IMG/VR virus record: IMGVR_UViG_3300042540_001399
Span: 62,001 to 126,000 of that record
Direction: 5' to 3' (one strand)
DNA: 64,000 nt
Positions 30,711 through 64,000 of the stretch are shown here, one piece after another; the stretch's first letter is position 1; each line of letters opens with the position of its first letter. Both the position numbers and the translations under genes were made by a program. The notes beneath the pieces are model-generated. The model was not told the origin of the DNA. It ran no database searches and saw nothing but the letters and a program-made list of their open reading frames with translations.

Positions 30711-31064
30711 ATGAAAAATATACTATCAAGTCTAACCACATCAGAAAAAAATAGAATTCTTGAAATGCACAGAAGAGCAACATCAAAATTTTATTTATTT
30801 GAATCAGATATAGATGGTGAAATTTATTGGCAATCTTGTGATCAAGAAATGAATTTATTATCAGATGAATCAAAATCTGGTTTAAAACCTGCGGGGAATG
30901 AAAATGGAAAAGATTTATTTTATTTTGAAATTTTACCCGAAGATAAGGCAAAAAATCCGCAATATGACATACAAGGTTGTGTCGGGATTGAAGGTAAAGA
31001 TAGTAAAGTCTATATTGAAGAATATGATGGTAAAAAAGTTTTAAGACTTTATGAAGGTTTTTAA
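30711..31064 (+). CDS. Hypothetical acidic protein with EKNRILEMH leader
   Basis: Own TATTTAT motif (30691) upstream and a terminator downstream. Confidence 0.6.
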   Translation: MKNILSSLTTSEKNRILEMHRRATSKFYLFESDIDGEIYWQSCDQEMNLLSDESKSGLKPAGNENGKDLFYFEILPEDKAKNPQYDIQGCVGIEGKDSKVYIEEYDGKKVLRLYEGF

Positions 31065-31083
31065 AATTAAAAAATAAATAAGT

Positions 31084-31108
31084 AACCCACCCAAAAGGTG
31101 GGTTTTTT
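31084..31108 (+). terminator. Intrinsic terminator
   Basis: aacccacc-caaaa-ggtgggtt followed by a T-run. Confidence 0.85.
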
Positions 31109-31113
31109 GTTAA

Positions 31114-31144
31114 TTGACAATCTAATCAAATATGACTATATTTA
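31114..31144 (+). promoter_or_regulatory. Candidate middle promoter TTGACA-N17-TATATTTA
   Basis: Lies between the terminator and the SbcD-like start. Confidence 0.65.
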
Positions 31145-31148
31145 GTAT

Positions 31149-31928
31149 ATGATTAAAAAACTTATACACTTTTCTGATTTACATATAAGATTATTCAAAG
31201 ACCATGAGATTTACAGATTAATTCTTGAAAATGCATTTAACGAATGGAAAAATTTAAATCCTGATAGAATTGTGTTTACTGGTGATTTAGTCCATTCAAA
31301 AAATCAAATGACTCCCGAACTTATTGAAATGGTAAGTTGGGTATTGAAAGAATGTTCTTCGATTGCAAAAACAATAATTATACCTGGTAACCACGACTTT
31401 TTAGTGAATAACACAGAAAGATTAGACGCTCTTTCACCAATAATAAATTCTTTGAACAACCAAAATATTGTATATTACAAAGATCGCGGTGTTTATGAAG
31501 ACGAAAATGTTAGTTGGTGTGTTTATTCTCAGTATCAACATAATATACCGCCAGATATCAACGTAGCAACAGGAATAAAAATTGGATTGTTCCATGGACC
31601 TATATCTGGTCTTAAAACGGATTTAGGGTTTGAATTTGGTGAAGAAGCTTATGATGTTGAAAAATTTGATGGTTTAGATGTTGTTTTGTGTGGGGACATT
31701 CACAAAAGATCTGAATTTAAATTCAAAACAGGAAAAGGATATATGATTGGGTCTACAATCCAAAATAATATTGGTGAAAGTGTTAACAATCACGGATATG
31801 GTGTTTACGACATACCAAATAAAGATTATGTTTATGTTGATCTATTTAATCCTAAACCATTTCTTAAGTTTTCAATTAGTTCATTCACAGATTTAGAACA
31901 TGGAACCGAAAAAATCCAAAATATTTAG
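31149..31928 (+). CDS. SbcD/Mre11/gp47-like metallophosphoesterase nuclease (short, 259 aa)
   Basis: SDLH, GDLVH, PGNHD, LFHGP, GDIHKR calcineurin-like motifs. An SbcC gene is nearby. Confidence 0.85.
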   Translation: MIKKLIHFSDLHIRLFKDHEIYRLILENAFNEWKNLNPDRIVFTGDLVHSKNQMTPELIEMVSWVLKECSSIAKTIIIPGNHDFLVNNTERLDALSPIINSLNNQNIVYYKDRGVYEDENVSWCVYSQYQHNIPPDINVATGIKIGLFHGPISGLKTDLGFEFGEEAYDVEKFDGLDVVLCGDIHKRSEFKFKTGKGYMIGSTIQNNIGESVNNHGYGVYDIPNKDYVYVDLFNPKPFLKFSISSFTDLEHGTEKIQNI

Positions 31929-32610
31929 TAAAGAAACAATGCAGGCAGTGTCTGCATATTGTGAGTCCGAAGATATTAAAGACGTTGATAAGTTTATGTA
32001 CCTTTGTTTTAAACAAGGATTTGATATCAAAAGATATGGATTTTTGGGGGAAACACTTAATGAAGGTGAAAAAGACTTAAAAATGAACGAAGTCCAAGAA
32101 AAATGGGTGGAAAAGGAGGTAATTGTTGAAAAACGAGTGGAAATTCCTGTTGAAGTCATCAAAGAAGTTGAAAAAATTGTTGAAGTCATAAAAGAAGTTA
32201 TTGTAGAAAAGGAAATAATAAAAGAAGTTCCAGTTGAGATTGTAAAAGAGGTTGAAAAGATTGTAACAATAACCAATAATGAAGAGCTTGAGGAAAAAAT
32301 TTTCCAATTAAACAAAGATTTGGAGTCAGAACGGAAAATTTTTTCCACTAAAATGGAAGAAATGGAAAATAATTTCCAAAATGAAATGTCTAAAAAGATT
32401 AAAGAATTAGATGAACTTAGACATAATTTAGACATTATAAAAGAAAATGACAAAACAAAACTCCTTCAGGATACTTTACAAAAATTAAGAAAAGAAATTT
32501 CAGATAAAAATAAAAAAATTGAAGAATTAGAAAAAATAAACAATAGACCAAATAGTGATGTAATAAATGCAATTTTCATGAAAGGGTCAAATTTAAAAGA
32601 TATATTATGA
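31900..32610 (+). CDS. Coiled-coil protein with alveolin-like E/K/V/I/P repeats
   Basis: VEKEVIVEKRVEIPVEVIKEVEKIVEVIKEV...KEVPVEIVKEVEKIV followed by a coiled coil. Confidence 0.7.
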   Translation: MEPKKSKIFSKETMQAVSAYCESEDIKDVDKFMYLCFKQGFDIKRYGFLGETLNEGEKDLKMNEVQEKWVEKEVIVEKRVEIPVEVIKEVEKIVEVIKEVIVEKEIIKEVPVEIVKEVEKIVTITNNEELEEKIFQLNKDLESERKIFSTKMEEMENNFQNEMSKKIKELDELRHNLDIIKENDKTKLLQDTLQKLRKEISDKNKKIEELEKINNRPNSDVINAIFMKGSNLKDIL

Positions 32611-33014
32611 TACAATTATTAATTTGGGTGATGGTTGCCTACGGAATGACAAACATTTTGGTTTACGGATCAATTTTTAATGGAATAAGGGATGGAATAC
32701 GTAATTGGGGTAACAATGAGTTAGCTCCTTTTAACTATATGGGATCTTTTATATCGGCATTAATATCGTGTGTTTTATGTACATCAACATGGGTTGGGTT
32801 TTTCTTATCATTAACATATTTTTCACCAAGTTATAATATCATTGGAACTAATAAAATTTTATCCGTATTTTTTGACGGGATGTTATCTGCTGGTTTTGTT
32901 TGGGCAATAAACTCTATAATCGAATGGTTCGAAGAAAATAGATTGTCAAATCAAAAACAAGAAGTTACATATGTGATACCTGAAGATGAAGAAGAACAAA
33001 TATTAAACGATTAA
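32607..33014 (+). CDS. Membrane protein (3 TM, CxxC-like CVLCTSTWVG)
   Basis: Three hydrophobic segments. The C..C.S.W.G motif is reminiscent of DUF1360-like proteins. Confidence 0.6.
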   Translation: MIQLLIWVMVAYGMTNILVYGSIFNGIRDGIRNWGNNELAPFNYMGSFISALISCVLCTSTWVGFFLSLTYFSPSYNIIGTNKILSVFFDGMLSAGFVWAINSIIEWFEENRLSNQKQEVTYVIPEDEEEQILND

Positions 33015-33024
33015 TAAAAATAAA

Positions 33025-33309
33025 ATGGGAAAAAAAGCAAAAGAACACAGAAAAAAAGTTGAAAAAAGAAATGCAAAAATAAAATCACAAAAAAGTGCAA
33101 TGCAAAAAGCTTTTGACATTCTAATGAAACAACAAATAGAAAAATTGAAAGAAAATAATAATTTGAATGTAAGTTTATCAGGACAACCATTATCATTCAA
33201 TGTTATGGATGAGAATGAAGAATTAATTGATGAAATTAATATTGAATCTGTAAAACCAACTGAATTTATTGAACTGAAAACACAAGAAAATAAGGAAGAA
33301 GAAGAATAA
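33025..33309 (+). CDS. Hypothetical protein (basic N-terminus, acidic C-terminus)
   Basis: Abuts the SbcC start. Codon usage consistent with neighbours. Confidence 0.55.
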   Translation: MGKKAKEHRKKVEKRNAKIKSQKSAMQKAFDILMKQQIEKLKENNNLNVSLSGQPLSFNVMDENEELIDEINIESVKPTEFIELKTQENKEEEE

Positions 33310-37845: not shown

Positions 37846-38646
37846 ATGAAAGACAAAAATGTTGGGGCACCAATAAATCAAGAAGAAATTCAACACTATC
37901 TTAAAGACATAAGAAAAATCAAGGTAATGACTCCTGATCGGGAAAAAGAACTTGCTAAGATTATGAAATCAGAAGGTATTAGTTTAAGACAACGTAAAGA
38001 AATTGAAGAAGAATTACTTAGGGGTAATTTAAGATTTGTTATAACTGTGGCAAAACAGTATCAAAATCAAGGTATGGACCTTTCAGATTTAATTGCTGAA
38101 GGAAACTTTGGATTAATGAAGGCGATCAAAAATTTTGATTGGAACAAAGACTTAAGATTTATTTCCTACGCAGTTTGGTGGGTAAAACAATCAATAATTC
38201 AGTCTCTAAATGACAACGCAAGAACAATAAGACTACCGGTTAATGTTGTACAAGATTTACAACGAGCAAAAAAAGAAGTGGAACAAACAGGGAAAAAATT
38301 AGACGATAAATTTTCTACACTACCATCTATTATTGATTTAGACATGACAATTAATGAAGATGGGGATACATTAATTGATATGATATCAAATCCTGATGCT
38401 GAACAACCAGATTCAGTATTTAACACAAAAGATATTTTAAAAGATAAACTAATGTCTCTTTTAAATGTTTTAGACGACCGTGAAAAAACAATCATTGGTG
38501 ATTACTTTGGTCTTACCGGCACTCCAAGAACTTTAGAAGATATTGGATCAGATTTCGGACTTACAAAAGAAAGGGTCAGACAGATTAAAGAAAAGGCATT
38601 ACGTAGACTTAGAAACGATAGTTCAGAATTATTTGATTATTTATAA
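37846..38646 (+). CDS. Sigma-70 family RNA polymerase sigma factor, similar to the Bacteroidota primary sigma (no region 1.1)
   Basis: NLRFVITVAKQYQNQG...LIAEGNFGLMKA...FISYAVWWVKQSIIQSL...IRLPVN, and region 4 TLEDIG..FGLTKERVRQIKEKALRRLR. Confidence 0.93.
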   Translation: MKDKNVGAPINQEEIQHYLKDIRKIKVMTPDREKELAKIMKSEGISLRQRKEIEEELLRGNLRFVITVAKQYQNQGMDLSDLIAEGNFGLMKAIKNFDWNKDLRFISYAVWWVKQSIIQSLNDNARTIRLPVNVVQDLQRAKKEVEQTGKKLDDKFSTLPSIIDLDMTINEDGDTLIDMISNPDAEQPDSVFNTKDILKDKLMSLLNVLDDREKTIIGDYFGLTGTPRTLEDIGSDFGLTKERVRQIKEKALRRLRNDSSELFDYL

Positions 38647-41790: not shown

Positions 41791-42207
41791 ATGAAAAAAT
41801 TTTTATTTACATTATTTATTTTTATTTCCTGTCTAAGTTACGGGCAAAAAAATTTACAAAAAGAAGATACGACAACAATATGTTTTCCTGTAAATGTAGG
41901 AAAACAAATACTTTTAGACTTGAACGAATTGGATAGATTGAAAAAACAATCATTAATGGATCAAAAAGAAATTAATCAGTTAGAATCGAAAGTAGAAAAA
42001 AAAGATACTATAATTGGGCTGTTAGAGCTAAAAGATAAAAACAATGAAATAATAATTAAAAATACTGAAGAAAAAGTAAAATTATTGGACGAAGAAAATA
42101 AAGAACTTAGAAAGGACATAAGAAAAATTAAAACAAAAAATACAGTTATAGAAATTGTTTCAGGATCAATAGTTGCGGCATTAACTTACGTATTAGTTTT
42201 TAAATAA
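41791..42207 (+). CDS. Signal peptide + coiled coil + C-terminal TM protein (spanin-like partner candidate)
   Basis: MKKFLFTLFIFISCLSYG-Q signal, coiled coil, IVSGSIVAALTYVLVFK tail. Confidence 0.5.
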   Translation: MKKFLFTLFIFISCLSYGQKNLQKEDTTTICFPVNVGKQILLDLNELDRLKKQSLMDQKEINQLESKVEKKDTIIGLLELKDKNNEIIIKNTEEKVKLLDEENKELRKDIRKIKTKNTVIEIVSGSIVAALTYVLVFK

Positions 42208-42210
42208 AAA

Positions 42211-42939
42211 ATGGAAGATTGGAAATCAGAAATACAAAAAAGTTTCTCTGATGTAATCGCTAAGGCTAGAGGTTACGAAGGTGGTGATCAAGTAGATCCT
42301 TCTTTAGCTATGCAATCCAAAAACGAACTATTATCAAACATACAAACAGAAGAAGAAAATGATAATGGTAAAAAAACTCATTATTTAGATTTCTTAAAAA
42401 ATAAAAGTGAAATTGGTGAAATTTACAAACTTATTAAAAACAAAAAATTATCCAATAACAAAATTAAACAAGAAATAAAAAATTACTTGAAAAACCCTGA
42501 AGACATAAAAACCTTCTTAGAAACTATTTTGGATAATAAAAAAACCAAAAAAGAAACTAAGGAAGCCACAGGAACAGGATCTGCTGGTGGATATGAGGCA
42601 CCTCTTTTTTCTGGCGAAGAACCTAAAAAAGTAGAAGCCACTGAAGCAACTGATTCTTCATCATCAGGGTCATACGTTACTACCGCGGCATGGGCTAAAT
42701 CTTTAAGTAAAAAAGATTGGAGAGGAAGATCAAAAACACAAATACCTGGAGGAAAATTCGTCCAAGTTAAAAAAAAATGTAAACGTTTCCCATATTGTAA
42801 TCAGGGTGATATCAAGGCTCTTAATATTTTTGAAAATAAAACATTGAACGGTGTAATAAAACGAATCAGTGATCGATATCAAATTCATGAAGATATTATA
42901 AAAGATATTATCCTGAGTGAAATGAATAAACTCCACTGA
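42211..42939 (+). CDS. Hypothetical protein (242 aa)
   Basis: Repeated EAT-x-x-S-x-G-x-Y motif (EATGTGSAGGY, EATDSSSSGSY) and CKRFPYCNQGD. Confidence 0.6.
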   Translation: MEDWKSEIQKSFSDVIAKARGYEGGDQVDPSLAMQSKNELLSNIQTEEENDNGKKTHYLDFLKNKSEIGEIYKLIKNKKLSNNKIKQEIKNYLKNPEDIKTFLETILDNKKTKKETKEATGTGSAGGYEAPLFSGEEPKKVEATEATDSSSSGSYVTTAAWAKSLSKKDWRGRSKTQIPGGKFVQVKKKCKRFPYCNQGDIKALNIFENKTLNGVIKRISDRYQIHEDIIKDIILSEMNKLH

Positions 42940-42966
42940 TCATATATTTATAATAAAAACAAAAAA

Positions 42967-44397
42967 ATGAAAAACTATTCTAGATTTCTAAATGAAAAAT
43001 ATAATACGACAAAATTTAATAGACCTGGAAAGTCTTTTGATTATGTTGAAGAAGAAGAAACATCCGAAGGAAATGCTTTCACAAAAATGTTGAAAAACAC
43101 AAAAAAAGGGGATAAATTTTCTTTGAATGGTAAAGAATATACTGATAGATCATCATTAGATGAAGAACCAATTTATGAAATTGAAGTCAACGATGGTGAA
43201 ATGTGTGAATGTGGTGGTCAAATGATGGAAGGTGAATGTACAGAATGTGGATACATGAAAGAATCTGAAATGAATGAAAAACTTCATGGAAATCAATTCA
43301 AATTGGACAAAAACAAAAACGGTAAAATTGATAAGTCAGACTTTGATTTATTAAGGAAAAGTAAAAAAAATATGAACGAAATTTCTGATGAGTTTGATTA
43401 TGAAATGCAAGAACCATGTCCTCATTGTAATGGTACGGGATATAACGAGTTTGATGATGTTGAATGCGAATGGTGTGATGGGACTGGTGAATATGATGAA
43501 TATGGGGATTTAAAAATTTCTGACGACATGCCAGATTATAAAACCAATTGGAAAATGCCTGAAGACGATTTTAATACAGATAGTAGTGATATTGTTTATG
43601 AAATAGAAATTGACGAAGACATGTATGATAACGCCGAAAAAACAACAGATTTTTGGAATCCTGGAAAAAAAGAATTGAGAACTAAAATGTATGAATACGA
43701 AATTTTTAATGAAAGATTAGGTAGATCAATTCGACTTACAGAAGAACAAGTCGTTAATTTAATTGAAAATTTGGCGGAAGAAAAAATGAAACCCGCCAAA
43801 AAAACTAGAGGATACACTGAATATGAAAGATCATTCAAAAAATCTGGAGACGAAAATCAAGACTATTATAAAGAGGTTGGGCAAAAAATGAAAAAATATG
43901 CTAAAGATGGGTCAATGGAAGATTTCACTATGGACGCAAAACATTTTCCTATGGGTAATGGTGAATTGAAAAAGATGGATAAAATGGCATATGTTCCATC
44001 AGACAGTGTGGCGGAATATGTAGAAAACTTTACAGCGGCGGCACTTGAAAACATTGATTATGATGAATTTGCTCCTAATGAAGAATGGGTAAAAGACAAC
44101 ATTGTCGGTTCTTCAAGAACAGGTAACAATCCTGAATGGGGCAATGCGGTCGAAACACCAACAAACAAAAAAAGAAACGAAATTAGAGAAAAAAATATGT
44201 TGGCTCAAATAAAAAGGAAGGCATATAATAAATCCGCACAACCTGTGGTTAAAGATAGACCAGGAAATGATGATGCATCCGATTTACTAAATAAAGTTGA
44301 AAAAGGTGAAAAGGCCGTATCAAAAAAGTCAAAAAAAGTTAATGAAAATATTGAAAGAATTGCTGGTTTGATTACCTACAATTCCAAAACACAATAA
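42967..44397 (+). CDS. Acidic mosaic protein, putative prohead core/internal head protein (476 aa)
   Basis: N-terminus MKNYSRFLNE, CECGG..CTECG, EF-hand-like DKNKNGKIDKSDF, two CxxCxGxG repeats, many (I/L/M)xE sites, own TATTTAT motif. Confidence 0.5.
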   Translation: MKNYSRFLNEKYNTTKFNRPGKSFDYVEEEETSEGNAFTKMLKNTKKGDKFSLNGKEYTDRSSLDEEPIYEIEVNDGEMCECGGQMMEGECTECGYMKESEMNEKLHGNQFKLDKNKNGKIDKSDFDLLRKSKKNMNEISDEFDYEMQEPCPHCNGTGYNEFDDVECEWCDGTGEYDEYGDLKISDDMPDYKTNWKMPEDDFNTDSSDIVYEIEIDEDMYDNAEKTTDFWNPGKKELRTKMYEYEIFNERLGRSIRLTEEQVVNLIENLAEEKMKPAKKTRGYTEYERSFKKSGDENQDYYKEVGQKMKKYAKDGSMEDFTMDAKHFPMGNGELKKMDKMAYVPSDSVAEYVENFTAAALENIDYDEFAPNEEWVKDNIVGSSRTGNNPEWGNAVETPTNKKRNEIREKNMLAQIKRKAYNKSAQPVVKDRPGNDDASDLLNKVEKGEKAVSKKSKKVNENIERIAGLITYNSKTQ

Positions 44398-44434
44398 TTT
44401 ACATAATTTTATATTACCGTATAATTATCCATAG

Positions 44435-44908
44435 ATGACCTCTATGGATAATTTTTTTAATTACATATCAAAACCAATCAATAAAGAAGACATTGATTTA
44501 TGGTTCAGAATAAATAATATTTTACCTGAAAAATTAGAATTATATTACGATTTTTCGTATTCCCTTTACGATTTAATAAGAAAAACTTTTTTGGGTGAGG
44601 AAGACAATAGCGAAACCAAAATTCAAATGTCTGAAGAAGACATCGTGAACCACTTCAAGTGGTGTTGGAATAAAACAATCGAAAGTTTTGAAAAAGAAGG
44701 AATTATTTTTACAAATGAAGGAGATCATTTGAAATACTTCAAGTCATTTTTTATTGAAATATTTTATAAACAAGAAGATAAAAAAATCAAAGAGTCTATT
44801 GGTGAATTTTTTGATGATATTTTTAACATAGAAAAAACATTTACCCAATCTGATTTAGATATTATGTTGAACATATATAAATCTTTAGATAACAATTTAA
44901 GTATTTAA
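44435..44908 (+). CDS. Hypothetical protein (157 aa)
   Basis: Clean ORF with upstream TTTACA-N16-TATAAT (44398-44425). Confidence 0.6.
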   Translation: MTSMDNFFNYISKPINKEDIDLWFRINNILPEKLELYYDFSYSLYDLIRKTFLGEEDNSETKIQMSEEDIVNHFKWCWNKTIESFEKEGIIFTNEGDHLKYFKSFFIEIFYKQEDKKIKESIGEFFDDIFNIEKTFTQSDLDIMLNIYKSLDNNLSI

Positions 44909-44969
44909 ATGTTTACATAAACATCATAATTAATATGTTTAACATTAAATAAACCTATAATATTTAAAA

Positions 44970-45140
44970 ATGGAAACACTTGAACAAATTAAAGTTTTGA
45001 CAGAACAATTGAGCGTGGATACAACCAAATTCTTTGCTGGTAACAAAAGTGCTGGTACAAGAGCTAGAAAATCAGCACAAGAACTGAAATCTTTATTACA
45101 ACAATTAAGAGGTGAAATTTTAGAAAGTAAAAGGGCTTAA
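44970..45140 (+). CDS. Histone H1-like (Hc1-family-like) small nucleoid protein, 56 aa (not in ORF track)
   Basis: METLEQIKVLTEQLSVDTTKFFAGNKSAGTRARKSAQELKSLLQQLRGEILESKRA. GNK(S/A)AGTRARK is the hallmark of Bacteroidota/Chlamydia Hc1-like proteins. Confidence 0.75.
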   Translation: METLEQIKVLTEQLSVDTTKFFAGNKSAGTRARKSAQELKSLLQQLRGEILESKRA

Positions 45141-45141
45141 T

Positions 45142-45336
45142 ATGACTAATATCGATACGTTATATTTGTTTGTATTTATATTTTCGATTATATCAATAAC
45201 TAGAATTTTTCTAAAATTTATTATTTCCCTATTACAGACAGATCCTAAACCTATTTTGTTTAGTAATAGGGAAATCTTTCTTTATGGTTTATTTTTAACT
45301 TATATAATAACATTTCTAATACAAAACAACAAATGA
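45142..45336 (+). CDS. Small 2-TM membrane protein
   Basis: Two hydrophobic helices. Coupled to both neighbours. Confidence 0.6.
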   Translation: MTNIDTLYLFVFIFSIISITRIFLKFIISLLQTDPKPILFSNREIFLYGLFLTYIITFLIQNNK

Positions 45337-45755
45337 GTTTATTTAAAGAATTTAACATTCTATTTCCGTATTTACAATCGGTAAGAAAAATGAAAAACTA
45401 TCTATCTTTTGATATAGAATTTCCAAATACTTGGAAATTACCAAAAAAGTTTGTAGATGAAAAAAGTGTTGTTGAAAACGACCCAACCAACGTCGGTGTA
45501 AGATTTTTTTCTTTTGTAACTCAGTTCAATGAACAATCTGTAGAAAATCAAATATCTAATATAAAAAACATTATTGCTTACAATAAAGAAAGAGAAGAAA
45601 AAGATCGACTATTTCAACAGAAGATAGATGAACTAAAACACATATTTGAAAAACAAAAGTTAAATGATCTACAAGGACTAAAATTTGAAATTAATAATCC
45701 TAAAATAGAATTAGAAGATGACGAAGAAGAAAACCAAGTTGGAAGCGGAAATTGA
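45333..45755 (+). CDS. Hypothetical protein (140 aa)
   Basis: ATGA coupling with the upstream gene. Confidence 0.6.
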   Translation: MSLFKEFNILFPYLQSVRKMKNYLSFDIEFPNTWKLPKKFVDEKSVVENDPTNVGVRFFSFVTQFNEQSVENQISNIKNIIAYNKEREEKDRLFQQKIDELKHIFEKQKLNDLQGLKFEINNPKIELEDDEEENQVGSGN

Positions 45756-45918
45756 TTGGTTGAAAAGTGAAATAGAAAAAGACAAAAATGATCTTGATAT
45801 TGAAAAACACAATTTAATTGCTGAAATTAAAAAACTAAAAAAAGAAGATATATTACCAAAAAAACCTGAAAAACTAAGTGTATGGGAGAAGATGAAAAAA
45901 ATATTAATGATATCTTAG
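45718..45918 (+). CDS. Hypothetical coiled-coil protein (66 aa)
   Basis: Fills the gap between neighbours with short overlaps. Confidence 0.5.
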   Translation: MTKKKTKLEAEIDWLKSEIEKDKNDLDIEKHNLIAEIKKLKKEDILPKKPEKLSVWEKMKKILMIS

Positions 45919-46208
45919 AAAAATTGTTAGTTGTTACTGAAGCGGCTAATGAAATTTTCCCAGAAGGAAAACCGATCTTGGTTTATGAATTGAATGATCA
46001 AGATTTCAAAAAAGTACAAAGTAATTTTAGAAAAATTGATATAAATAAATTAAGATTTAAAATAGATATTTCAGGTACAGAAATAGTTTTTGTTAATACA
46101 AAAGTTTACGAAGAAACAAAAGACGAAGAAGTAAAGAATGAAAAAAAACCAAGTTTTTTCAAAAGATTATTCTTTCGTAAAAGTAGTGAATCTTCTGTAA
46201 AGAAATGA
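45882..46208 (+). CDS. Hypothetical protein (108 aa)
   Basis: Clean ORF ending KKPSFFKRLFF. Confidence 0.5.
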   Translation: MGEDEKNINDILEKLLVVTEAANEIFPEGKPILVYELNDQDFKKVQSNFRKIDINKLRFKIDISGTEIVFVNTKVYEETKDEEVKNEKKPSFFKRLFFRKSSESSVKK

Positions 46209-46805
46209 TTTGTTAATTCCTTTTGATTCTAAAATATTATATAAATATTTTTTTTGTTCTTTAGAAGAATCTTTGACTAAAATACAATCCAACCTGTTAT
46301 TACTTATCAAGTAAGATTCCAATACATCCATAAACCTTGAACACTCGTCGATAGACTTCAATGAAATCAAATTGACATCATTATCATTTTGTATCGCGAC
46401 TTTATTGTTCAATTTTGAAACTAACTTTATGTTTGATTTAGGTAAATATTTTTTTACAAAAGAATCAAAATTAATTTTAGATTTTTCCTGAACGTCATAA
46501 ACTTCTTCATGAATATTATATTTCGAAATTTTACTTAATCTATAGTTAGTATCGTCGAGATCAACTTTTACCTGCCTTCCGAGTTCATCTTTTACAAAGT
46601 ATAAATCAAAATTTGTACTACCCGATTCCAAAAAACCAATTTCGTAATCACACAATTTTCCATTTTCAAAACGTTTAGGAAAATTCACTGAATTGCTAGT
46701 TTGTAGTAAAAAATCAAAGTATTTTAATGCTCTTTCTTTATTCAAAAATTTATTTAGAATCTTTTTTCTTTTTTTATTTTTGAATAGTACTATTAGATAT
46801 TTCAT
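46167..46805 (-). CDS. Hypothetical basic protein (likely start 46805)
   Basis: MKYLIVLFKNKK follows an A-rich leader. The longer start at 46937 would overlap dnaJ. Confidence 0.6.
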   Translation of the reverse strand: MKYLIVLFKNKKRKKILNKFLNKERALKYFDFLLQTSNSVNFPKRFENGKLCDYEIGFLESGSTNFDLYFVKDELGRQVKVDLDDTNYRLSKISKYNIHEEVYDVQEKSKINFDSFVKKYLPKSNIKLVSKLNNKVAIQNDNDVNLISLKSIDECSRFMDVLESYLISNNRLDCILVKDSSKEQKKYLYNILESKGINKSFLYRRFTTFTKE

Positions 46806-46849
46806 TTTTTTTATCCTATAATTTAAAATATACAAGAAAAAAACAATAA

Positions 46850-47773
46850 ATGAACGCTGAAAATCATTACTCTGTTTTAGGGGTTGAAGAAACCGCAACT
46901 CAAGAAGAAATAAAAAAAGCTTATAGAAAATTGGCAAAAGAAAATCATCCCGATAAAGGTGGGGATGAAGAATTATTTAAAAAAATTTCCGTGGCATATG
47001 ATGTAGTTGGTGATGAACAAAAAAGAAAAGAATACGACATACAAAGAAAAAATCCGTTTGCCGGGTCCAACTTCAGGGATTTTAGTAGTATGTTTAATAT
47101 GTTTAATCAGAATTTTAGACAACAACAGAAACCTTCAAGAATTATTACACTTTCTGTAGATGTTATAAAAAGTTTCATGAATGAAAAAGTTAACTTGAAT
47201 TATCAAAGAAAAGAAAAGTGTGATCCATGTAATGGTACTGGTGGGGACAAACGATCATGTGCCACTTGTAAAGGTGAAGGTGTTTTATGGGCACAAGTTG
47301 GTAGTGGGATGTTTGTTCAGATGGTACAAAAGATTTGTACTTCATGTAATGGTTTTGGTCATACATTGATTAATGCATGTCATGTTTGTAAAGGTGATGG
47401 TAATAAAGATGAGGTAAAAAGTGTTGAACTTAGAATACCACATGGGATTGATGATGGTCAAATGATGCGTTTACAAAACATGGGAGATTTCGAAAATGGT
47501 ATTTACGGTGATCTTTTAGTTAAAATAACATTAACAAATGAAAGTGGTTTTGAAAAGTTTGGTGAACACCTATTATATAATAAATATTTCACATTGGACG
47601 ATCTCAATCAGGAAAATTTTGTTATCCCACATCCACAAGGTGAAATAATGGTTAATTTTCCAAAACAAATGGATACATCAAAACCATTAAGACTTAAAGG
47701 AAAAGGATTTAAAGGTAGAAACGTTATTGGGGATCTACTTGTCAAACAATTTTTAAAATATGAAAGAAGTTAG
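46850..47773 (+). CDS. dnaJ: DnaJ chaperone (J domain, Zn finger, C-terminal domain)
   Basis: HYSVLGV...[13 protein letters not shown]. Four CxxCxGxG-type repeats. [21 protein letters not shown]. Confidence 0.92.
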
Positions 47774-47928
47774 AAAGAACTAATAATGTCCTGTACTAAT
47801 CTTACTGCCCCATATATAGAAAGACCTAATAAAACTATACCAAAAGTGACCAAAAATAATTGTAATTTTTCTTGTCCTTTATTACATTTTCTACATCCTG
47901 TAACTTGTGTTGCTTCTTTTTTTTCCAT
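47770..47928 (-). CDS. Small membrane protein with CxxC (52 aa, not in ORF track)
   Basis: [52 protein letters not shown]. Confidence 0.6.
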
Positions 47929-47935: not shown

Positions 47936-48442
47936 TTATAATATTACAGTCCTTAAATGAAAATACTTTTCTAACATAACTTTTCTTGATTGAAGAACAT
48001 CTTTACCGTATAGTTTTAGATAAGTACCATTATCAGAAAATGTACTTGACACAATTAAAAATGTATTATCATCACTTCTTGCAAGTATGAATTCAATATA
48101 GTCAAATACGTGTTCATCTTTATTATCTTCTCTTTTAAATACAAATTTTATTTTTTTTTCTGTTGGATCTTTAGAAAATTCATATAAAATTTTTTTATAT
48201 TTATCACGAATTATATCAGAAAGCATAGTATTAGGTACTCCAACTCTTGTATGAATCTTACTACCTGAATAAATTGCATTTAAAATTATATCTTTTATTT
48301 CCCCATAACTTAAATTACTTTTTCTATCTGAAGTTTGATGAGTTGTTGCAATAAATTTTGGACCTTCAGGCGCAGTAAAAAGTTTATGGTGTTTACCACG
48401 ATTTTCTATTATTATACTTTTAAGTACACTTAATACTTTCAT
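47936..48442 (-). CDS. Hypothetical protein (likely start 48442)
   Basis: MKVLSVLKSIIIEN leader. TATTTAT at 48448-48454 on the minus strand. Confidence 0.6.
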   Translation of the reverse strand: MKVLSVLKSIIIENRGKHHKLFTAPEGPKFIATTHQTSDRKSNLSYGEIKDIILNAIYSGSKIHTRVGVPNTMLSDIIRDKYKKILYEFSKDPTEKKIKFVFKREDNKDEHVFDYIEFILARSDDNTFLIVSSTFSDNGTYLKLYGKDVLQSRKVMLEKYFHLRTVIL

Positions 48443-48465
48443 TAGTAATAAATAGCACAAAAAAT

Positions 48466-49544: not shown

Positions 49545-49582
49545 TTTTTTGACTTGTTGAAATATTTATTAATAAAAAAATT

Positions 49583-51520
49583 ATGGAATTAGTAAAGTTA
49601 TTATCCAATATAGTAAAAGAAAACACCAAAGTTAAAAATAGTTTATTATTAGAATATCCAGAATCAACAATTAAAAGGTTAGTCCTTAAGTTTAGTGGAA
49701 GTACAGAAGACACGGTAGATCAAATTAGACAAACCATTTCTGATTTTGAAAGATTCAAAAATACCTTGGTAGGAGCTGAAAGGGACATCTTCACATATGA
49801 TTATCAAAAATTAAAGGATCTTGTAAAGTCTAAAAGTGAAAGTCAAAAATCTAAAAGAACTTTTGATGATGTTTTTAAAACATTCATGGAAAAAAATGCT
49901 GGTGCAGACAAAAGACTTACTAAATTGAATATTAAAAAGTTTTTTGAAATGAAAGCTTTAGATCCAAAAAGATTCAGAAAAGACATTTTGGACATGACAT
50001 CTATGGAATTGTCATCTTTGGTTAGACGTGAATTTGAAAATTTCATGAAAGAAAAATTAACAGAAAAGTTAATAAAAGAAAATCCTCAAGAAAATATTGA
50101 ACAAATAGTCAATAGGGTTGATAGATATGTTGCAAACTACACATTAGTCCCTATAAATACAAAACCTGCAGGTATGATGAATTTTGTTGAATTCGAACAT
50201 GTTGTGGATGTTTTACCAATGGAAGACGAATATAAAATTCCTGAAATTGATGTTTCTGATGTTGATGTTGTTTTTGAAGACGACAGCATTCTGATATTCA
50301 ATCCTGATCAAAAACACAAGTGTATCAATATACGAAAAAAGTTTGCCCCTGATAGAAGATGGTGTACATCTTGGGAAGGGTCATCGAATTATTTTTATAA
50401 TTATAGGCTTAGACAAAATCTTACATTATACTATGTTATAAATAAAAATTTAAATGAAAGCGATGTAAATTTTGCGGTTGTTATACTGGTTGATTATGAT
50501 TGGAGAAAAAATGTACAATTTAGATTAGCCGATGGTACAAACTCAGGAAAATACGCCGGAGCAACCGTTTTACCTTGGAGTGAAATAACTAAAAAAATAC
50601 CAAATTTAATCGGTAAAGAAAAATATTTTGTACCGCATCCATACTCTTCTGAACAACAAAGTATGATGATGAGCTTCGAAAGAAAAAATTTGACATCTAC
50701 CGACGCAATAAAAGAACTTGGTTCTGAAGAAAACGTTGAATTATGGTTAGAATTAAGGACTCCTGATTTAACTCAGATCGCTACTGGCCCAATAATTTGG
50801 AAAAATTTTACACCTTATTTGAGACATAAATACATTGGTATGGACGGTAAATTGAATGCTGAAATGTTGAAATTTACTGATAAGGAAAGTAAAGATTACT
50901 ATCTTACTAAAAAACGTAAATCACTTTTGTTAACTGACATTGACAAATTGACAGAGGCGGATGTTTCTTTGATTATGAGTGATGAAATGTCACCATATCA
51001 TGAAGCACTTATTAATTCATATGCAAAACAATTGGCAAAGAAAAATATTGATCTTAGTTATCTACCGATATCATTCCCTAATGATTCCGCAGCTAAATTT
51101 GCCACCATGTTTGGTTTAGACACATTGTTTTCTATTTTACCTGAAGATACAAGATTCCTTAATTTGGAAAACAAATCAGACAAACAGGAACCATTTGACG
51201 TACCCGCAAACATATCAAGATTCAAAAATTTGAAAACATTTGTTGCTGACAATATTATCAAAAGTTTACCTGAATCAATTGGTGAATGTAAAATGTTGTC
51301 TTTCCTAAATGTCACAGGAAATAAAGAATTAAAAACTTTACCAAAGTCACTAGCAACTTTGTATTGTCTCAACTTTATTTCAGTTATGGATTCTGGCATT
51401 GATATTGATAACCTACCAAAGGAGCTATTCAAACACATGATACCTACTGAAGATTTTTTCATAGTCAATTTCCCTGAAGAGCTCAAAGTTAAAAGAGGTT
51501 GTAAATCTAACGAAGACTAA
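49583..51520 (+). CDS. Large protein with central WCTS module and C-terminal leucine-rich repeats
   Basis: RWCTSW...YFYNY...LYYVINK, then LKTFVADNIIKSLPESIGECKMLSFLNVTGNKELKTLPKSLATL LRR units. Confidence 0.65.
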   Translation: MELVKLLSNIVKENTKVKNSLLLEYPESTIKRLVLKFSGSTEDTVDQIRQTISDFERFKNTLVGAERDIFTYDYQKLKDLVKSKSESQKSKRTFDDVFKTFMEKNAGADKRLTKLNIKKFFEMKALDPKRFRKDILDMTSMELSSLVRREFENFMKEKLTEKLIKENPQENIEQIVNRVDRYVANYTLVPINTKPAGMMNFVEFEHVVDVLPMEDEYKIPEIDVSDVDVVFEDDSILIFNPDQKHKCINIRKKFAPDRRWCTSWEGSSNYFYNYRLRQNLTLYYVINKNLNESDVNFAVVILVDYDWRKNVQFRLADGTNSGKYAGATVLPWSEITKKIPNLIGKEKYFVPHPYSSEQQSMMMSFERKNLTSTDAIKELGSEENVELWLELRTPDLTQIATGPIIWKNFTPYLRHKYIGMDGKLNAEMLKFTDKESKDYYLTKKRKSLLLTDIDKLTEADVSLIMSDEMSPYHEALINSYAKQLAKKNIDLSYLPISFPNDSAAKFATMFGLDTLFSILPEDTRFLNLENKSDKQEPFDVPANISRFKNLKTFVADNIIKSLPESIGECKMLSFLNVTGNKELKTLPKSLATLYCLNFISVMDSGIDIDNLPKELFKHMIPTEDFFIVNFPEELKVKRGCKSNED

Positions 51521-56901: not shown

Positions 56902-56983
56902 GGTCAATTGTTTTTATAAGGTTTATTTATTTATAAATATCAACACTAAGACTATTTTGTAAATCACAAATATTTATGATTGT

Positions 56984-58513
56984 ATGAAAAAGAAATTAAT
57001 TCTAACCGAAACACAATTTAAAACTGTTTTACAAAGGATTGTAGAAGATGATGTTGTTGAAAAAATATATTTAACACCTGAAGAATATATGCAGTATTTG
57101 AAACAAGTAGGGTTTATGGCACACGCTATTCCATATTTACCAAAATTTACAGGAAAAAAAATTGTGGTAAAAGGGAACTTGAACCTTTCAGATCTCAGTG
57201 GTAAAAATAAAATTTACAAGTTAGGGAATATAGAAGTAACAGGTAATTTAGATGCTTCTAAAACAGGAATTAAAAATTTCGATGATGTTGTTGTTGGTGG
57301 AAGAATATCATTTTGGGATACACCTTATGAAAAGGAACTTATAAGAAAAAAACAACTTGCAAAAAGAAACGAACAGGATGGTAAAAGGGATAGAAATGAA
57401 TGGAGTTTAGATGGTACTGATGAAGAAGGTGAAAAGGCTAACGCAGCGTTTGAATATGCCGTTAATGAAGGGTATTTAGAAGGTATAACTGATGATGAAC
57501 AAGATAGAATATCTGAAATAAATAGAGAAATTGAAGAATTAGAAGAAGAACAAGAAAATTTGGATGCTGGTGATGAAAATTATAGTGAAAAGTTTGATGA
57601 AATTACTGATAAACAAATGGAACTTGAAGATGAAAAAAATGAAATATTATCTGATAGAGTTGATGTTTACGATTTATATAATATCGGAAGACATTATGAT
57701 CTAACAAATTTTGAATCTTTATCCACAGGCCATCAATATGCGGTTGGTACTGAAGATGAATGTGACGAGTCATTAAAAATGTACTATGAAGAAATGGTCG
57801 ATAGTATGGAACATTATTTTGATAATAATTTTATTTCAAGATATGTTGATGGGGATGAAGTGGCAGAGTACTTCGAAGATTCTGTAAGTGAATGGGTTAG
57901 GGATGAACCAGATAGTTATGGGGTCGAAAAACAATTAAGTAAAGATCAAGAAAAAGAAATTTGGGTTTTAGAAATGGAAAAATGGGTATATGAAAACGAA
58001 GGTGTTAGATTTCCGATAAAATACCCAACAATGGAAGAAAATGGTAAAGTATTTGATTTTTGGGATGAAAATGAAGAACATGAGTTTCAATATAGAAATG
58101 AAAGTTCAGACCCATCCAAAAGTCATTGGGTGTTATATAAAGATGGGCAAGTTGTCCCACCTCACCAAATATATGATGATGAAGAAACCCAAGAACAAAA
58201 AGATGATCGTGAAAGTAGAATATCCGATATTGATTATGAAATAGAAGAAATAAAAGATAATCCTGATGGTGAACCATCAGAAGAAGATATAGAATATGCG
58301 ATAGAAAGTTATATTGATGACAACATTAAAAACGATCCTGTAAGTTTTTTACAACAGATGGGATATGACGACTATTCGAATTTTGTAAATAAACAGGAAA
58401 TGTTAGATGATCTTGTAAGTGATGGTGAATATGGTTCGTTAAATGGTTACGACGGTAGTTATGATTCTGTTAGAATTAACGGTACATACTATATAGTAAT
58501 GAGAATTGATTAA
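56984..58513 (+). CDS. Highly acidic hypothetical protein (509 aa)
   Basis: MKKKLILTETQFKTVLQRIVE leader, D/E-rich body, TATTTAT at 56971. Confidence 0.7.
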   Translation: MKKKLILTETQFKTVLQRIVEDDVVEKIYLTPEEYMQYLKQVGFMAHAIPYLPKFTGKKIVVKGNLNLSDLSGKNKIYKLGNIEVTGNLDASKTGIKNFDDVVVGGRISFWDTPYEKELIRKKQLAKRNEQDGKRDRNEWSLDGTDEEGEKANAAFEYAVNEGYLEGITDDEQDRISEINREIEELEEEQENLDAGDENYSEKFDEITDKQMELEDEKNEILSDRVDVYDLYNIGRHYDLTNFESLSTGHQYAVGTEDECDESLKMYYEEMVDSMEHYFDNNFISRYVDGDEVAEYFEDSVSEWVRDEPDSYGVEKQLSKDQEKEIWVLEMEKWVYENEGVRFPIKYPTMEENGKVFDFWDENEEHEFQYRNESSDPSKSHWVLYKDGQVVPPHQIYDDEETQEQKDDRESRISDIDYEIEEIKDNPDGEPSEEDIEYAIESYIDDNIKNDPVSFLQQMGYDDYSNFVNKQEMLDDLVSDGEYGSLNGYDGSYDSVRINGTYYIVMRID

Positions 58514-59324: not shown

Positions 59325-59567
59325 ATGAAACAAAAAAACTATCCGAAACCTCAAGAAAAATTTCAACATTATAAAGGTGGTCAGTACGAAGTTATTTGTA
59401 TGTGTAATCATACAGAAACTAAAGAACCTCTTGTGATTTACAAATCTCTTTCTTTTGGTTCACAATACGCAAGACCATTTTCTCAGTGGTATGAGGAAGT
59501 TGATATCGAAACATACGGGGGAAAGGAATACCCAATTTCAAGATTTATAAAAATAGAAGAATTTTAA
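59325..59567 (+). CDS. DUF1653-family protein
   Basis: FQHYKGGQYEVI...HTETKEPLVIYKSL...YARPFSQW. Confidence 0.8.
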   Translation: MKQKNYPKPQEKFQHYKGGQYEVICMCNHTETKEPLVIYKSLSFGSQYARPFSQWYEEVDIETYGGKEYPISRFIKIEEF

Positions 59568-61096: not shown

Positions 61097-61207
61097 AAAA
61101 GTTGAAATCAGAAATTATTTATCGAGTAATTTTTTTTATAATCATGATTGGTACTATAACTTTGACATGGACTTTAATATACAAGTTAATAAAAATAATT
61201 TTTTAAA

Positions 61208-62056
61208 ATGATAGAAACAGGAAAAATAATAAATGGGGATTGTGTGGAAGTAATGAAGACACTACCTGAAGGATGTATTGATTTGGTGGTAACATCTCCC
61301 CCATATGGTGTTGGAATTGACTATGACGTACATAATGATGACATGGAATTTAATGATTATGTTGAATTTGCAAAGTCATGGTTAACAGAAACATATAGAG
61401 TATTGAAAGATGATGGAAGAATTGCTCTTAATATACCATATGAGATCAATCGTCAAAAAAAAGGTGGTCGTATATTTTTTGTTTCAGAAATATGGCAAAT
61501 TATGAAAGAAATTGGTTATGGTTTCTTTGGTATTGTTGATTTAGAAGAACAATCACCACACAGAAGTAAAACCACAGCTTGGGGTTCATGGATGAGCCCA
61601 TCGTCACCATACATTTATAACCCTAAAGAATGTGTAATATTGGCTTACAAGAAAAAACACATCAAGAAAGTTAAAGGTGAACCTGAATGGACCGGTGAAT
61701 TAACAGAAATTGAAAATGAAGATGGGACAAAAAGAAACAAAATGGTTTATGAAGATAAAGACAAAAAAGAATTTATGGAACTTGTCTTCGGTCAGTGGAA
61801 TTATTTTGCTGACACTAAATCTCTCACTAAAGCAACCTTCTCTATGGACATCCCGACCAAGGCAATCAAAATATTGTCATATAAGAACGATATAATATTA
61901 GATCCCTTTGCTGGAAGTGGAACAACTTTGGTTGCCGCTCAAGTGTTAGGAAGAAATTGGTTAGGTATAGAATTAAGTCCAAACTATTCAGAAATTGCAA
62001 AAACAAGGGTAGAATATTTCAAAACCTTGGAACAAATAAAAGAAATAGAGTTTTAA
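61208..62056 (+). CDS. Beta-class DNA methyltransferase (N4-C/N6-A)
   Basis: INGDC...VVTSPPY (motif IV first) ... ILDPFAGSGTT...GIEL (motif I later). SPPY suggests m4C. Confidence 0.9.
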   Translation: MIETGKIINGDCVEVMKTLPEGCIDLVVTSPPYGVGIDYDVHNDDMEFNDYVEFAKSWLTETYRVLKDDGRIALNIPYEINRQKKGGRIFFVSEIWQIMKEIGYGFFGIVDLEEQSPHRSKTTAWGSWMSPSSPYIYNPKECVILAYKKKHIKKVKGEPEWTGELTEIENEDGTKRNKMVYEDKDKKEFMELVFGQWNYFADTKSLTKATFSMDIPTKAIKILSYKNDIILDPFAGSGTTLVAAQVLGRNWLGIELSPNYSEIAKTRVEYFKTLEQIKEIEF

Positions 62057-62058
62057 GT

Positions 62059-62085
62059 AAACCCCCTTAAATGGGGGTTTTTTTA
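62059..62085. terminator. Intrinsic terminator between convergent genes
   Basis: aaaccccc-ttaaat-gggggttt followed by a T-run. Confidence 0.85.
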
Positions 62086-62622
62086 TTGTAATGAAATCCA
62101 TTTAGATTTATAATCTAAATTGGTGGCACAATATCTACCATAGTCATTTACAACTGGCCTACCTGTATTGTACCAACCACAAACAATTGACCAATTACCA
62201 TACTTTTTGTGCAAGTAATTAAGAAGTTTCATACTTGTCATGACATTTAATTCTAAATCAGACATTATTTTATTTTTACTGTAGTTTGAATTGTTGATCC
62301 AATTACAAGTTTTTGGTAAAACTTGCATCGGACCAACAGCTCCAACAGAAGAAACCTGATTCGGATTGTAATTCCAATGAAACGGTCCCATATATCTTGT
62401 TTCTTTAAACGCAACATTGTAGGCGATGTATTTTGGAACTGAATATTCATCAGAATATTTTTCTATTAAATCAAAAAGAACCATAGAACTAAATTGTTTA
62501 GTTTTGAAATTACTTTTGTTGTCTAATGGTTTGTAATCGTTGGAAAAACTATCGAATGAAAATGAAAAATATATCAAAAATGAACAAAAAAGTCCGTAAT
62601 AAAAAACTGTTTTTATCTTCAT
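62083..62622 (-). CDS. Lytic transglycosylase (SLT) with N-terminal signal/anchor
   Basis: IAYNVAFKETRY (catalytic E), SSVGAVGPMQVLP, YLHKKYGNW, WYNTG. Confidence 0.85.
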   Translation of the reverse strand: MKIKTVFYYGLFCSFLIYFSFSFDSFSNDYKPLDNKSNFKTKQFSSMVLFDLIEKYSDEYSVPKYIAYNVAFKETRYMGPFHWNYNPNQVSSVGAVGPMQVLPKTCNWINNSNYSKNKIMSDLELNVMTSMKLLNYLHKKYGNWSIVCGWYNTGRPVVNDYGRYCATNLDYKSKWISLQ

Positions 62623-62623
62623 A

Positions 62624-62941
62624 CTATTTTTCCGATTTGACTATAACATTTCTGGCGTACATATTAAAAATTGCAACACCAATTGAATCTTCATAAACAG
62701 TGTAATTACCATTATTCTTATCAATTATGATTAAGTGGTTATTTTCATCAATTGCCAAATTAACCTGTGACTTGTCCAAAGAAATCATTTCTATGGTTGG
62801 TGATTTGGGACCATAAATTCTGTGGTAAAGATAACCAACAGAAAACCCACTAACAATGGAAAGTGAAAGTACAGTTATGACTGTGACTTTTTTGATCATT
62901 GGTTTTGAATTCTCGATTAAAGCTTTGATTTTTTCTTTCAT
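62624..62941 (-). CDS. Single-TM membrane protein
   Basis: VTVITVLSLSIVSGFSVGYLY. Co-transcribed with the SLT gene. Confidence 0.65.
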   Translation of the reverse strand: MKEKIKALIENSKPMIKKVTVITVLSLSIVSGFSVGYLYHRIYGPKSPTIEMISLDKSQVNLAIDENNHLIIIDKNNGNYTVYEDSIGVAIFNMYARNVIVKSEK

Positions 62942-62967
62942 AATATATTTTTTTTATTGGTTTGATA

Positions 62968-62999
62968 CAAATATAATAATTTTATCAACAATTTACAAA
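62968..62999 (-). promoter_or_regulatory. Bacteroidota sigmaA-type promoter TTTG-N20-TATATTTG
   Basis: Both elements at canonical spacing. Confidence 0.7.
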
Positions 63000-63031
63000 A
63001 TTTAATCTTCAACAATCGATATTTATGTTAT

Positions 63032-64000
63032 ATGAAAAAAGGAATATTAGTAGAATCAGGAATTAGGGACATTAAAAAGCTTGCTGATAGATACAAAAAG
63101 GCTAAAATTTATTTTCATCAAGATTTGGATGGTGTAACTACTGCAATTGCTATGAAAGAATATTTGGAAGATAATGGTATTGACGTTGTTGACGCCGAAA
63201 TAATACAATATGGTGATAAAGAATTTGCAATAAAAAAACTTGACGCTGAAGGTGATACGATGCCGGTTTTGGTTGATTTTGCCCACGGAAAACCAATGTT
63301 TGTAATTCACACAGATCACCATGATACACAAGCTGGTGTAGAAAAAGGAACATCTACATCATTCAAAAGTTCAAGGTCTAACGTTGAAACAATATCTCAA
63401 AGTTTATCACCTAAAGAAATTTTTACACAAGAAGACATAACGTTAATATCAACTGTTGATTCTGCAAATTTTGCTCAATACAATATATCAGTTGACGATG
63501 TAATGAAGTATATTTTCAAATTAGATAAGAATTCTGATGTTAAAAGAAATAAAATGTTGTTAGGATTAGTTGCTAATAAATTACTTTTAGCGTTCAAAAA
63601 TAAACCCGGATTTCTTGAAGAATTAGTATTAGACTGTAAACCATCGTTACTGAATATTTTATTAAAGATCAAATCAATTATGAAACGAGAAGGTTTTGAT
63701 GATGAAGAAAAACTCACACAAAATCAACAGGCCTACATCCAAAATATGAATGTTAGCCCCAACGTTAATGTTAGCGGTAACATATTAGTTCAATACGGAG
63801 GTGGATACATGACACCACAAGGTTCATATGATAGATATACACCATTTAAAAACAATCCAGACGCTGATTTTTTAGTAATTGCATGGCCGTTGGGATTAGT
63901 TCAAGCATCATGTAACCCATACAAAAAAGAACGAGCACTTAAGGGTGTTGATTTGGGTGAAATCAAAAATGAAGTATTGGATGAAATGAATCCAGAATTA
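63032..64000 (+). CDS. DHH-family phosphoesterase, 3'-truncated by window edge (not in ORF track)
   Basis: Open frame to the end of the window: IYFHQDLDG, LVDFAHG, IHTDHHD. TATTTAT at 63020. Confidence 0.8.
   Translation, partial: MKKGILVESGIRDIKKLADRYKKAKIYFHQDLDGVTTAIAMKEYLEDNGIDVVDAEIIQYGDKEFAIKKLDAEGDTMPVLVDFAHGKPMFVIHTDHHDTQAGVEKGTSTSFKSSRSNVETISQSLSPKEIFTQEDITLISTVDSANFAQYNISVDDVMKYIFKLDKNSDVKRNKMLLGLVANKLLLAFKNKPGFLEELVLDCKPSLLNILLKIKSIMKREGFDDEEKLTQNQQAYIQNMNVSPNVNVSGNILVQYGGGYMTPQGSYDRYTPFKNNPDADFLVIAWPLGLVQASCNPYKKERALKGVDLGEIKNEVLDEMNPEL

Follow-up and report, generated by a model that had tools for sequence, protein, structure and literature searches.

Leader-bearing genes at the locus

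The window examined here, the whole 64,000-nucleotide stretch of DNA that was analysed, occupies bases 88,638-152,637 of a 274,138-bp IMG/VR virus record of ~30% G+C. It holds six genes whose products begin with short leaders, and these leaders, together with their counterparts elsewhere in the genome, are the subject of this work. The six N-termini quoted in a preliminary description of the window agree exactly with our translations, and its statement that each gene has its own TATTTAT motif also holds, the motif being found 12-22 nt 5' of each ATG (Table 1). In all six proteins the leader ends in a hydrophobic residue at P3 (I, L or V), any residue and then Glu.

Leader types were defined by comparing the first 40 residues of all proteins with one another and iterating with hidden Markov models (HMMs). 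Five types resulted, which overlap: A (MKRIVRLTESDL.RIVRRVI.E), B (MNLQENI.RIK.MMG...E), C (MKNIIR.IL.EE), D (..SEK.RILEMH...) and E (MKIIITE.Q...). A site matrix was also built from 35 curated leader ends of the phage.

Table 1. Leader genes of the window and their late-type motifs (window coordinates; pI, isoelectric point)
Feature	Position	Strand	Description	Spacing or basis
TATTTAT motif of g94	30691..30697	+	late-type motif	20 nt 5' of gene
g94	30711..31064	+	117 residues; D-type leader of ~31 residues (30711-30803) ending YLFE; orphan cargo	leader HMM D match
Motif of g111	42945..42951	+	late-type motif	22 nt 5' of gene
g111	42967..44397	+	476 residues; acidic, pI 4.8; short leader MKNYSRFLNE (42967-42996)	orthologues
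g120	47936..48442	-	168 residues; basic, pI 9.5; leader MKVLSVLKSIIIE (48404-48442)	orthologues
Motif of g120	48448..48454	-	late-type motif	12 nt 5' of gene
Motif of g122	49563..49569	+	late-type motif	20 nt 5' of gene
g122	49583..51520	+	645 residues; leader MELVKLLSNIVKE (49583-49621)	borderline HMM E match and orthologues
Motif of g133	56971..56977	+	late-type motif	13 nt 5' of gene
g133	56984..58513	+	509 residues; very acidic, pI 4.25; A-type leader of 21 residues (56984-57046) ending IVE	HMM A match
Motif of g142	63020..63026	+	late-type motif	12 nt 5' of gene
g142	63032..64000	+	460 residues in total; minimal 8-residue leader MKKGILVE (63032-63055); extends 414 nt beyond the window	orthologues

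The clearest result among the six genes is g142. This is a core gene of the clade, present on at least 599 IMG/VR contigs, and those orthologues whose start was read keep the hydrophobic-hydrophobic-x-Glu end, followed by SG(I/L)RD. In six distinct orthologue N-terminal variants a full canonical leader (types A or E) is fused immediately before ESGIRD, such that the full leader is gained or lost at one exact junction, Glu-Ser-Gly. Glu8 of g142 itself has the top site-matrix score among the 25 Glu residues of the protein. The cargo was first described as a DHH phosphoesterase; we find it DHH-like, at 21.8 bits against the Pfam DHH family, which falls under that family's cut-off.

Two further genes, g94 and g133, are clear members of the leader HMMs, and neither gave a Pfam or PHROG match. 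With its paralogue f247, g94 has SEKxRILEMH...YLxE in common. The leader of g133 matches HMM A with E = 4e-13, and the N-terminus of an orthologue that is 42% identical is a canonical MKKVIKLTESDL...KLNE leader. The match of g122 is borderline, being present in the first HMM scan and absent in a later one; its Glu13 has the top site-matrix score among 49 Glu residues, and the leader is conserved in 20 of the 22 distinct orthologue N-termini. Behind the leader of g122 come a variable linker and three domains: one helical, one beta and, at the C-terminus, one of leucine-rich repeats (LRR). An AlphaFold model made with 18 orthologues as input has an isolated helix at residues 2-15, a linker at 14-23 with a predicted local distance difference test score (pLDDT) below 50, and then the folded domains. 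Foldseek matches to LRR proteins span the C-terminal 100-200 columns, and the earlier naming of this gene as an LRR protein is thus borne out by fold for its C-terminal end.

Leader membership of g111, g120 and g142 is judged from their orthologues only. In ten of the 11 distinct g111 orthologues there is a leader, of greater or lesser length, that ends [I/L]-x-E, and all lie behind ATATTTAT; the ten-residue leader of g111 itself is an abridged form of longer ones in its orthologues. Seven distinct orthologue N-termini were recovered for g120; six retain the leader with its I/L-x-E end, and the other one (L269) has a different and probably mis-called start. Still, g120 itself gave no leader-HMM match and a weak site-matrix score. 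Within g111 we also observed an EF-hand-like loop (DKNKNGKIDKSDF) and a DnaJ-type CxxCxGxG zinc-finger motif (the Pfam matches of this protein are weak), and residues 255-269 form a weak internal leader-like module.

The positions that these genes occupy vary between relatives. At the g94 slot (window 30305-31928, compared with L013 and L014) the syntenic relatives hold an unrelated secreted Lcl_C-domain gene instead; a 119-residue Lcl_C gene of a relative was considered as a g94 orthologue and rejected, since, once translated, it proved to be a secreted protein unrelated to g94 at that position. A further slot, close to window 25.9-28.3 kb, has a 166-residue A-leader cargo in relatives and different genes here. 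Judged from these comparisons, the cargo slots are hyperplastic.

A selected N-terminal module across the genome

The preliminary description had spoken of basic amphipathic leaders ending in hydrophobic-x-Glu. In that loose form the pattern is at chance level: [ILVMF]xE ends within the first 25 residues of 45% of N-termini, and random internal windows give 43%. The figures are 64% for late-motif genes and 47% for the others. What stood were the stricter leader families. Their HMMs, run over the whole genome as had been proposed, matched the N-termini of 42 of 346 proteins and were almost confined to N-termini, the only two convincing copies elsewhere being one internal to f299 and one at the C-terminus of f345. 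Hydrophobic-hydrophobic-x-Glu is 3-4 times enriched at residues 10-21, and the control patterns [ILV]xD, [ILV]xQ and [AGS]xE showed no enrichment at N-termini, with [AGS]xE depleted. With the site matrix, a high-scoring site at the N-terminus was found in 13 more long proteins, against 4.7 +/- 1.9 expected from internal windows. Taking the 42 HMM members with about ten suggested by the matrix gives ~50 leader genes, and we therefore predict about 50 leader proteins, roughly 15% of the genes. The set is thus not the six genes originally named, and most of it lies outside the window: 30 of the 42 HMM leader genes are found at 180-240 kb, often in tandem.

At the 35 curated leader ends, which were picked at a Glu and hence have P1 Glu by construction, P3 is I in 17, L in 15 and V in 3, P2 is unconstrained (most often Asn), and leader lengths run from 8 to 31 residues. 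The leader is predicted to form a basic amphipathic helix of net charge about +4, charged throughout. It has no hydrophobic core, which rules out a Sec or lipoprotein signal; genuine signal peptides do occur in the genome, on other genes that cluster separately. In orthologues of f213, which are 51-77% identical overall, the leader is near-invariant; V-I-x-Glu is followed at once by an acidic linker rich in indels, and a conserved domain comes next. The paralogues f256 and f323 are identical at 22 of 22 leader residues with nine synonymous codon differences, which shows selection on the peptide and not on the DNA or RNA. These data support the view that the leaders are a genuine, selected N-terminal module ending in [I/L/V]-x-Glu, beyond which carriers are no longer alike. 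A full-text literature search with the leader strings gave nothing relevant, and an ESM Atlas look-up of f323 gave no usable lead.

The cargos that follow the leaders are mostly orphans in Pfam and PHROG scans. They had been called unrelated to one another, and their folds do differ; the acidic character ascribed to some of them is likewise evident in g111 and g133 (Table 1). Outside the window, f260 carries an M23 peptidase, f317 an M23 peptidase fused to a tail-lysozyme domain and f222 a DUF2237 domain. Cell-wall hydrolases such as the M23 peptidase and tail lysozyme are typical of virion-delivered enzymes.

Leader genes and a putative late promoter

Among A/T 7-mers at -27..-10 in front of genes, ATATTTAT ranks first, with 83 occurrences compared with 11 for the median 7-mer and 18 for its reverse complement. 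TATTTAT lies at two preferred distances, -22..-19 and -13..-11. It is found 5' of genes for the tail, the baseplate and further virion parts, and the complete genome described below has it also 5' of the terminase, prohead protease and scaffold genes, whereas the identified replication genes do not have it at the usual position. On this distribution, TATTTAT can reasonably be taken as a late or morphogenetic promoter.

An equal frequency of leaders in early genes had been named as grounds against a packaged set; the HMM-defined leader is not equally frequent in genes that lack the motif, being enriched behind it. Leader genes lie directly behind it in 19 of 42 cases vs 64 of 304 others (odds ratio 3.1, p = 0.0016), and at operon level the link extends to 33 of 42 leader genes vs 131 of 304 others (odds ratio 4.8, p = 2e-5).

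Genome-wide, just 11-22 nt separate the motif from the ATG, and the spacings fall into two discrete classes, which suggests that the 5' leaders of the transcripts are very short or absent. Metatranscriptome contigs over 42000-47900 are sparse fragments that hold no start-site information. By eye, the N-terminal region of g103 (window 37846-38646) resembles sigma-factor region 2, and this protein could be a reader of ATATTTAT.

A T4-like head module and prohead protease

PHROG and Pfam scans of ~40 large proteins revealed no T4-type capsid protein, portal, protease or terminase on the window's own contig, which we attribute to an assembly break at the head/packaging module and not to true absence. 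Two IMG/VR contigs of ~290.8 kb have a gene identical to g3, and one of these, G001 (290,887 bp), was examined in full. It is 99.97-100% identical to our contig over overlaps of 12.4 kb and 4.5 kb and joins both contig ends, adding 16,616 bases (G001:247499-264114). The stretch that this complete genome adds encodes a terminase (Terminase_6N, 2.5e-15), a T4-type portal (Portal_T4, 6e-52), a prohead protease of 238 residues (Peptidase_S77, 1e-22), a very acidic scaffold-like protein of 585 residues and a gp23-type capsid protein (Gp23, 2e-73; T4 gp23 structures, 3e-27). With Gp23, Portal_T4 and Terminase_6N all present, the head belongs to the T4-like lineage, and the phage is a ~291-kb freshwater T4-like jumbo phage.

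The protease aligns to the T4 gp21 structure 5JBL (1e-13), with His and Ser where the 5JBL chain has Ala; we take these two Ala residues to be inactivating mutations of the gp21 catalytic pair. Its S80 Pfam match is marginal (0.007) compared with 1e-22 for S77. When the leader-derived matrix was applied to the capsid protein, Glu60 (FLINE|A) ranked first of 31 scorable Glu residues, and Glu23, in the same N-terminal region, ranked second. From residue 61 onward the capsid protein aligns with residues 80 onward of full-length T4 gp23, which corresponds to position 15 of the mature chain. Glu60 thus lies just upstream of the region aligned to the start of mature gp23, and the predicted cut falls at the expected propeptide boundary.

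Leader-like N-termini, with Glu-Ala after them, are also present in two members of the head module, f333 (directly 5' of the terminase gene) and f345. The product of f345 (L018:12846-13799, minus strand; just 3' of the capsid gene) is a basic protein of 317 residues in which the second leader module stands at the extreme C-terminus. The scaffold C-terminus was also considered as a B-type leader; the two are alike by eye, and the HMM gives this no support.

Distribution of the leader in metagenomes and relatives

Among 1.84 billion proteins, a profile of the A leader matched 7,146 cluster representatives (E <= 0.001), so that this one leader type is found on at least 7,146 protein clusters at 50% identity. 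Nearly all of the best 150 matches begin at residue 1, and carriers are from 30 to at least 751 residues long, some with two or three copies, C-terminal ones included. Among 168 metagenomic carriers, a sample selected by the profile and whose conservation is therefore partly circular, pairwise identity is 81% in residues 1-22 vs 10% in residues 23-34; Glu occupies position 22 and I, L, M or V position 20 in 167 of 168 each, and position 21 is free.

The lineage comprises at least 575 to 599 IMG/VR contigs. In each of five divergent relatives (194-322 kb, of which four are near-complete) we found a single S77 protease together with 2-14 A-type leaders. Comparison of the window genes with 50,697 phage records by megablast and tblastn found no close relative, and no cultured leader carrier came to light. 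Judged from the baseplate wedge, the best of the distant relatives, at 24-28% identity, are Flavobacterium phage immuto, Microcystis phage Mel-JY01 and an uncultured phage of 484 kb; no A-type leader was found in these three or in T4. The style of the signal peptides, SprB-type domains and the remote kinship with Flavobacterium phages point to a freshwater bacterium of the Bacteroidota as the probable host.

Comparison with known systems

The T4 protease gp21 cleaves after L/I-X-E, and the T4 internal proteins have N-terminal core-targeting propeptides of 10-19 residues that are later removed (PMC9026906). In the T4 record, IPII and IPIII start with MKTYQEFIAE followed by Ala, and the IPI propeptide is 19 residues long, ending Ile-Thr-Glu, again followed by Ala. 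Our leaders resemble those of IPI, IPII, IPIII and Alt in being N-terminal propeptide-like segments that end L/I-x-Glu on unrelated cargos, in a phage that also has a gp21-family protease and a gp23/gp20 head module. Going by the promoter motif, their expression may follow the timing of morphogenesis. There are clear differences, however. T4 has a handful of carriers, whereas ~50 per genome are predicted here; the leader here is mostly longer (11-31 residues), basic and helical, falls into several sub-types and cannot be aligned to the T4 capsid targeting sequence (CTS); and some carriers here have internal or C-terminal copies. The C-terminal copies recall the C-terminal processing of T4 Alt and gp21 (PMC9026906).

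The preliminary description had placed MKNYSRFLNE of g111 beside the T4 sequence MKTYQEFIAE. Since Tyr4 and Phe7 are not kept in g111 orthologues, this likeness is probably accidental. Only g111 resembles the T4 CTS, and the leader matrix of the phage scores real T4 sites at background.

The internal proteins of T-even phages form a very varied group with only the CTS in common (Rao and Black, PMC3012670). The polymorphic loci that encode these injected, defence-countering proteins share with the present system a conserved tag on hypervariable cargo and the occupation of one slot by different genes in relatives; the difference is that here a single leader type is found on at least 7,146 clusters, in uncultured freshwater phages.

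In phiKZ, 201phi2-1 and SPN3US, inner-body and ejection proteins are cut after Glu by a diverged gp21 homologue, gp175/gp245 (PMC9026906), and the SPN3US head holds ~50 protein species, many of them ejection proteins (PMC7411985). Given the latter number, ~50 leader cargos are not implausible. The likeness is that these are also jumbo phages with many head proteins cut after Glu; however, their proteases cut at S/A/G-x-Glu, and their propeptides are long with no shared short tag. P3 is never S, A or G at our 35 leader ends, and the protease is clearly of the S77 family.

A further comparison is offered by the Dar antirestriction proteins of phage P1, which are packaged into the head through N-terminal signals and injected as anti-defence factors. 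In both cases an N-terminal region is, or would be, the part that directs head incorporation. The P1 head is of another lineage, and the Dar proteins are not known to share a short cleavable tag. Set against these systems, the leader system appears to be new: a greatly expanded T4 capsid-targeting system with a different leader.

Interpretation and alternatives

We consider, with a probability of roughly 0.6, that the leader is a cleaved capsid-targeting propeptide, as in the T4 internal proteins but on a far larger scale. The leader helix would carry the cargo joined to it into the scaffolding core as the prohead assembles, and the gp21-family prohead protease would then cut after the leader Glu, so that the mature cargo stays in the head alongside the DNA. 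The packaged cargo might subsequently be ejected into the host at infection, with a possible anti-defence or DNA-mimic role.

Several observations weigh against this interpretation. The [ILV]-x-Glu motif is short and common (16 per 1000 residues), and the curated ends and the top-150 metagenomic sample were chosen with the same motif, which makes their agreement partly circular. Beyond the cut motif the leader is unlike the T4 targeting sequence, and the simple N-terminal model needs extension to account for the internal or C-terminal copies in some carriers. Nine of the 42 leader genes have no late-motif link. The leader Glu is missing from one g111 orthologue (L109) and from two g122 orthologues (L226 and L253). 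The evidence for the protease comes from the near-identical G001 and not from the window's own record. Finally, the cargos reach 832 residues and would need to exit through the tail.

It is also conceivable, if unlikely, that the leader targets proteins to the virion or to assembly without being removed by the protease, either as a permanent helix that binds scaffold, DNA or the capsid interior, or as a tail or baseplate anchor. A basic leader of net charge about +4 would suit a highly acidic scaffold protein, some carriers have internal or C-terminal copies, and the M23 peptidase and tail-lysozyme cargos would also suit tail-associated enzymes. However, Glu is invariant, P2 varies and P3 is hydrophobic, a combination that a gp21-type site needs and a binding helix does not require, and the capsid protein's propeptide boundary is picked out by the same matrix. 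An indel-rich linker after the Glu likewise speaks against a permanent tag, and ~22 residues are short for a tail anchor domain. We think it slightly less probable again that the leader acts in the infected cell with no relation to the virion, as a localisation signal, a degradation or chaperone tag, or an oligomerisation helix of late host-takeover proteins. Most cargos are orphans, which leaves room for such roles, and the conserved DHH-like g142 could equally serve nucleotide or DNA metabolism. The promoter motif that leader genes have in common with head and tail genes argues otherwise, as does a boundary that fits the specificity class of the phage's own prohead protease, and the lack of a hydrophobic core removes a Sec or lipoprotein signal from the options.

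The idea that the leaders have no targeting function, and are duplication relics, linkers for recombination during cassette shuffling or a constraint on translation starts or mRNA in an AT-rich genome, is very improbable and has been largely refuted. Its attraction lies in the clustered, often tandem arrangement of 30 of the 42 leader genes at 180-240 kb and in the general favour that MK(K/N) starts enjoy in AT-rich genomes. Against it stand the heavy synonymous divergence beneath identical peptides, the unrelated downstream folds, and a leader that is near-invariant on at least 7,146 clusters where the following residues are 10% identical. Nor would it explain internal copies without a start codon or the single exact junction at which DHH orthologues acquire or shed the full leader.

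Other features of the genome

Outside the window, at genome 51403-53535 on the minus strand (L003:11403-13535), lies a gene for a late-motif protein of 710 residues in which a complete Fe/Mn superoxide dismutase is embedded (Sod_Fe_N, 1e-20; Sod_Fe_C, 1.5e-39). At genome 248.5-254.7 kb (L010:18552-L011:4744), 22 tRNA genes form a cluster that has the leader gene f299 inside it. At genome 270168-273027 an M20/M28-like peptidase adjoins a 686-residue homologue of an ATP-dependent protease (phrog_4871, 2e-236).

Implications for T4-like jumbo phages

If the leader is a capsid-targeting propeptide, then the proteome that a very abundant uncultured lineage packages, and probably injects, could be recognised from the sequence tag alone. 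This would offer thousands of candidate first-strike effectors, among them counter-defence proteins, cell-wall enzymes and a DHH-like phosphoesterase, and would show that the tag-directed loading of cargo known from T4 can expand to ~15% of a genome. It would also provide a second, longer natural tag for putting foreign proteins into T4-type capsids. More tentatively, these phages may possess a plug-and-play delivery system, common to a widespread clade of uncultured freshwater T4-like jumbo phages, in which a 22-residue leader that hardly varies, together with its sub-types, would route thousands of unrelated proteins into the prohead, ~50 in each genome, and the protease would free them for injection. 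Were this delivery to be real, it would represent by far the largest known arsenal of phage-injected effectors, with a catalogue that could be read from sequence.

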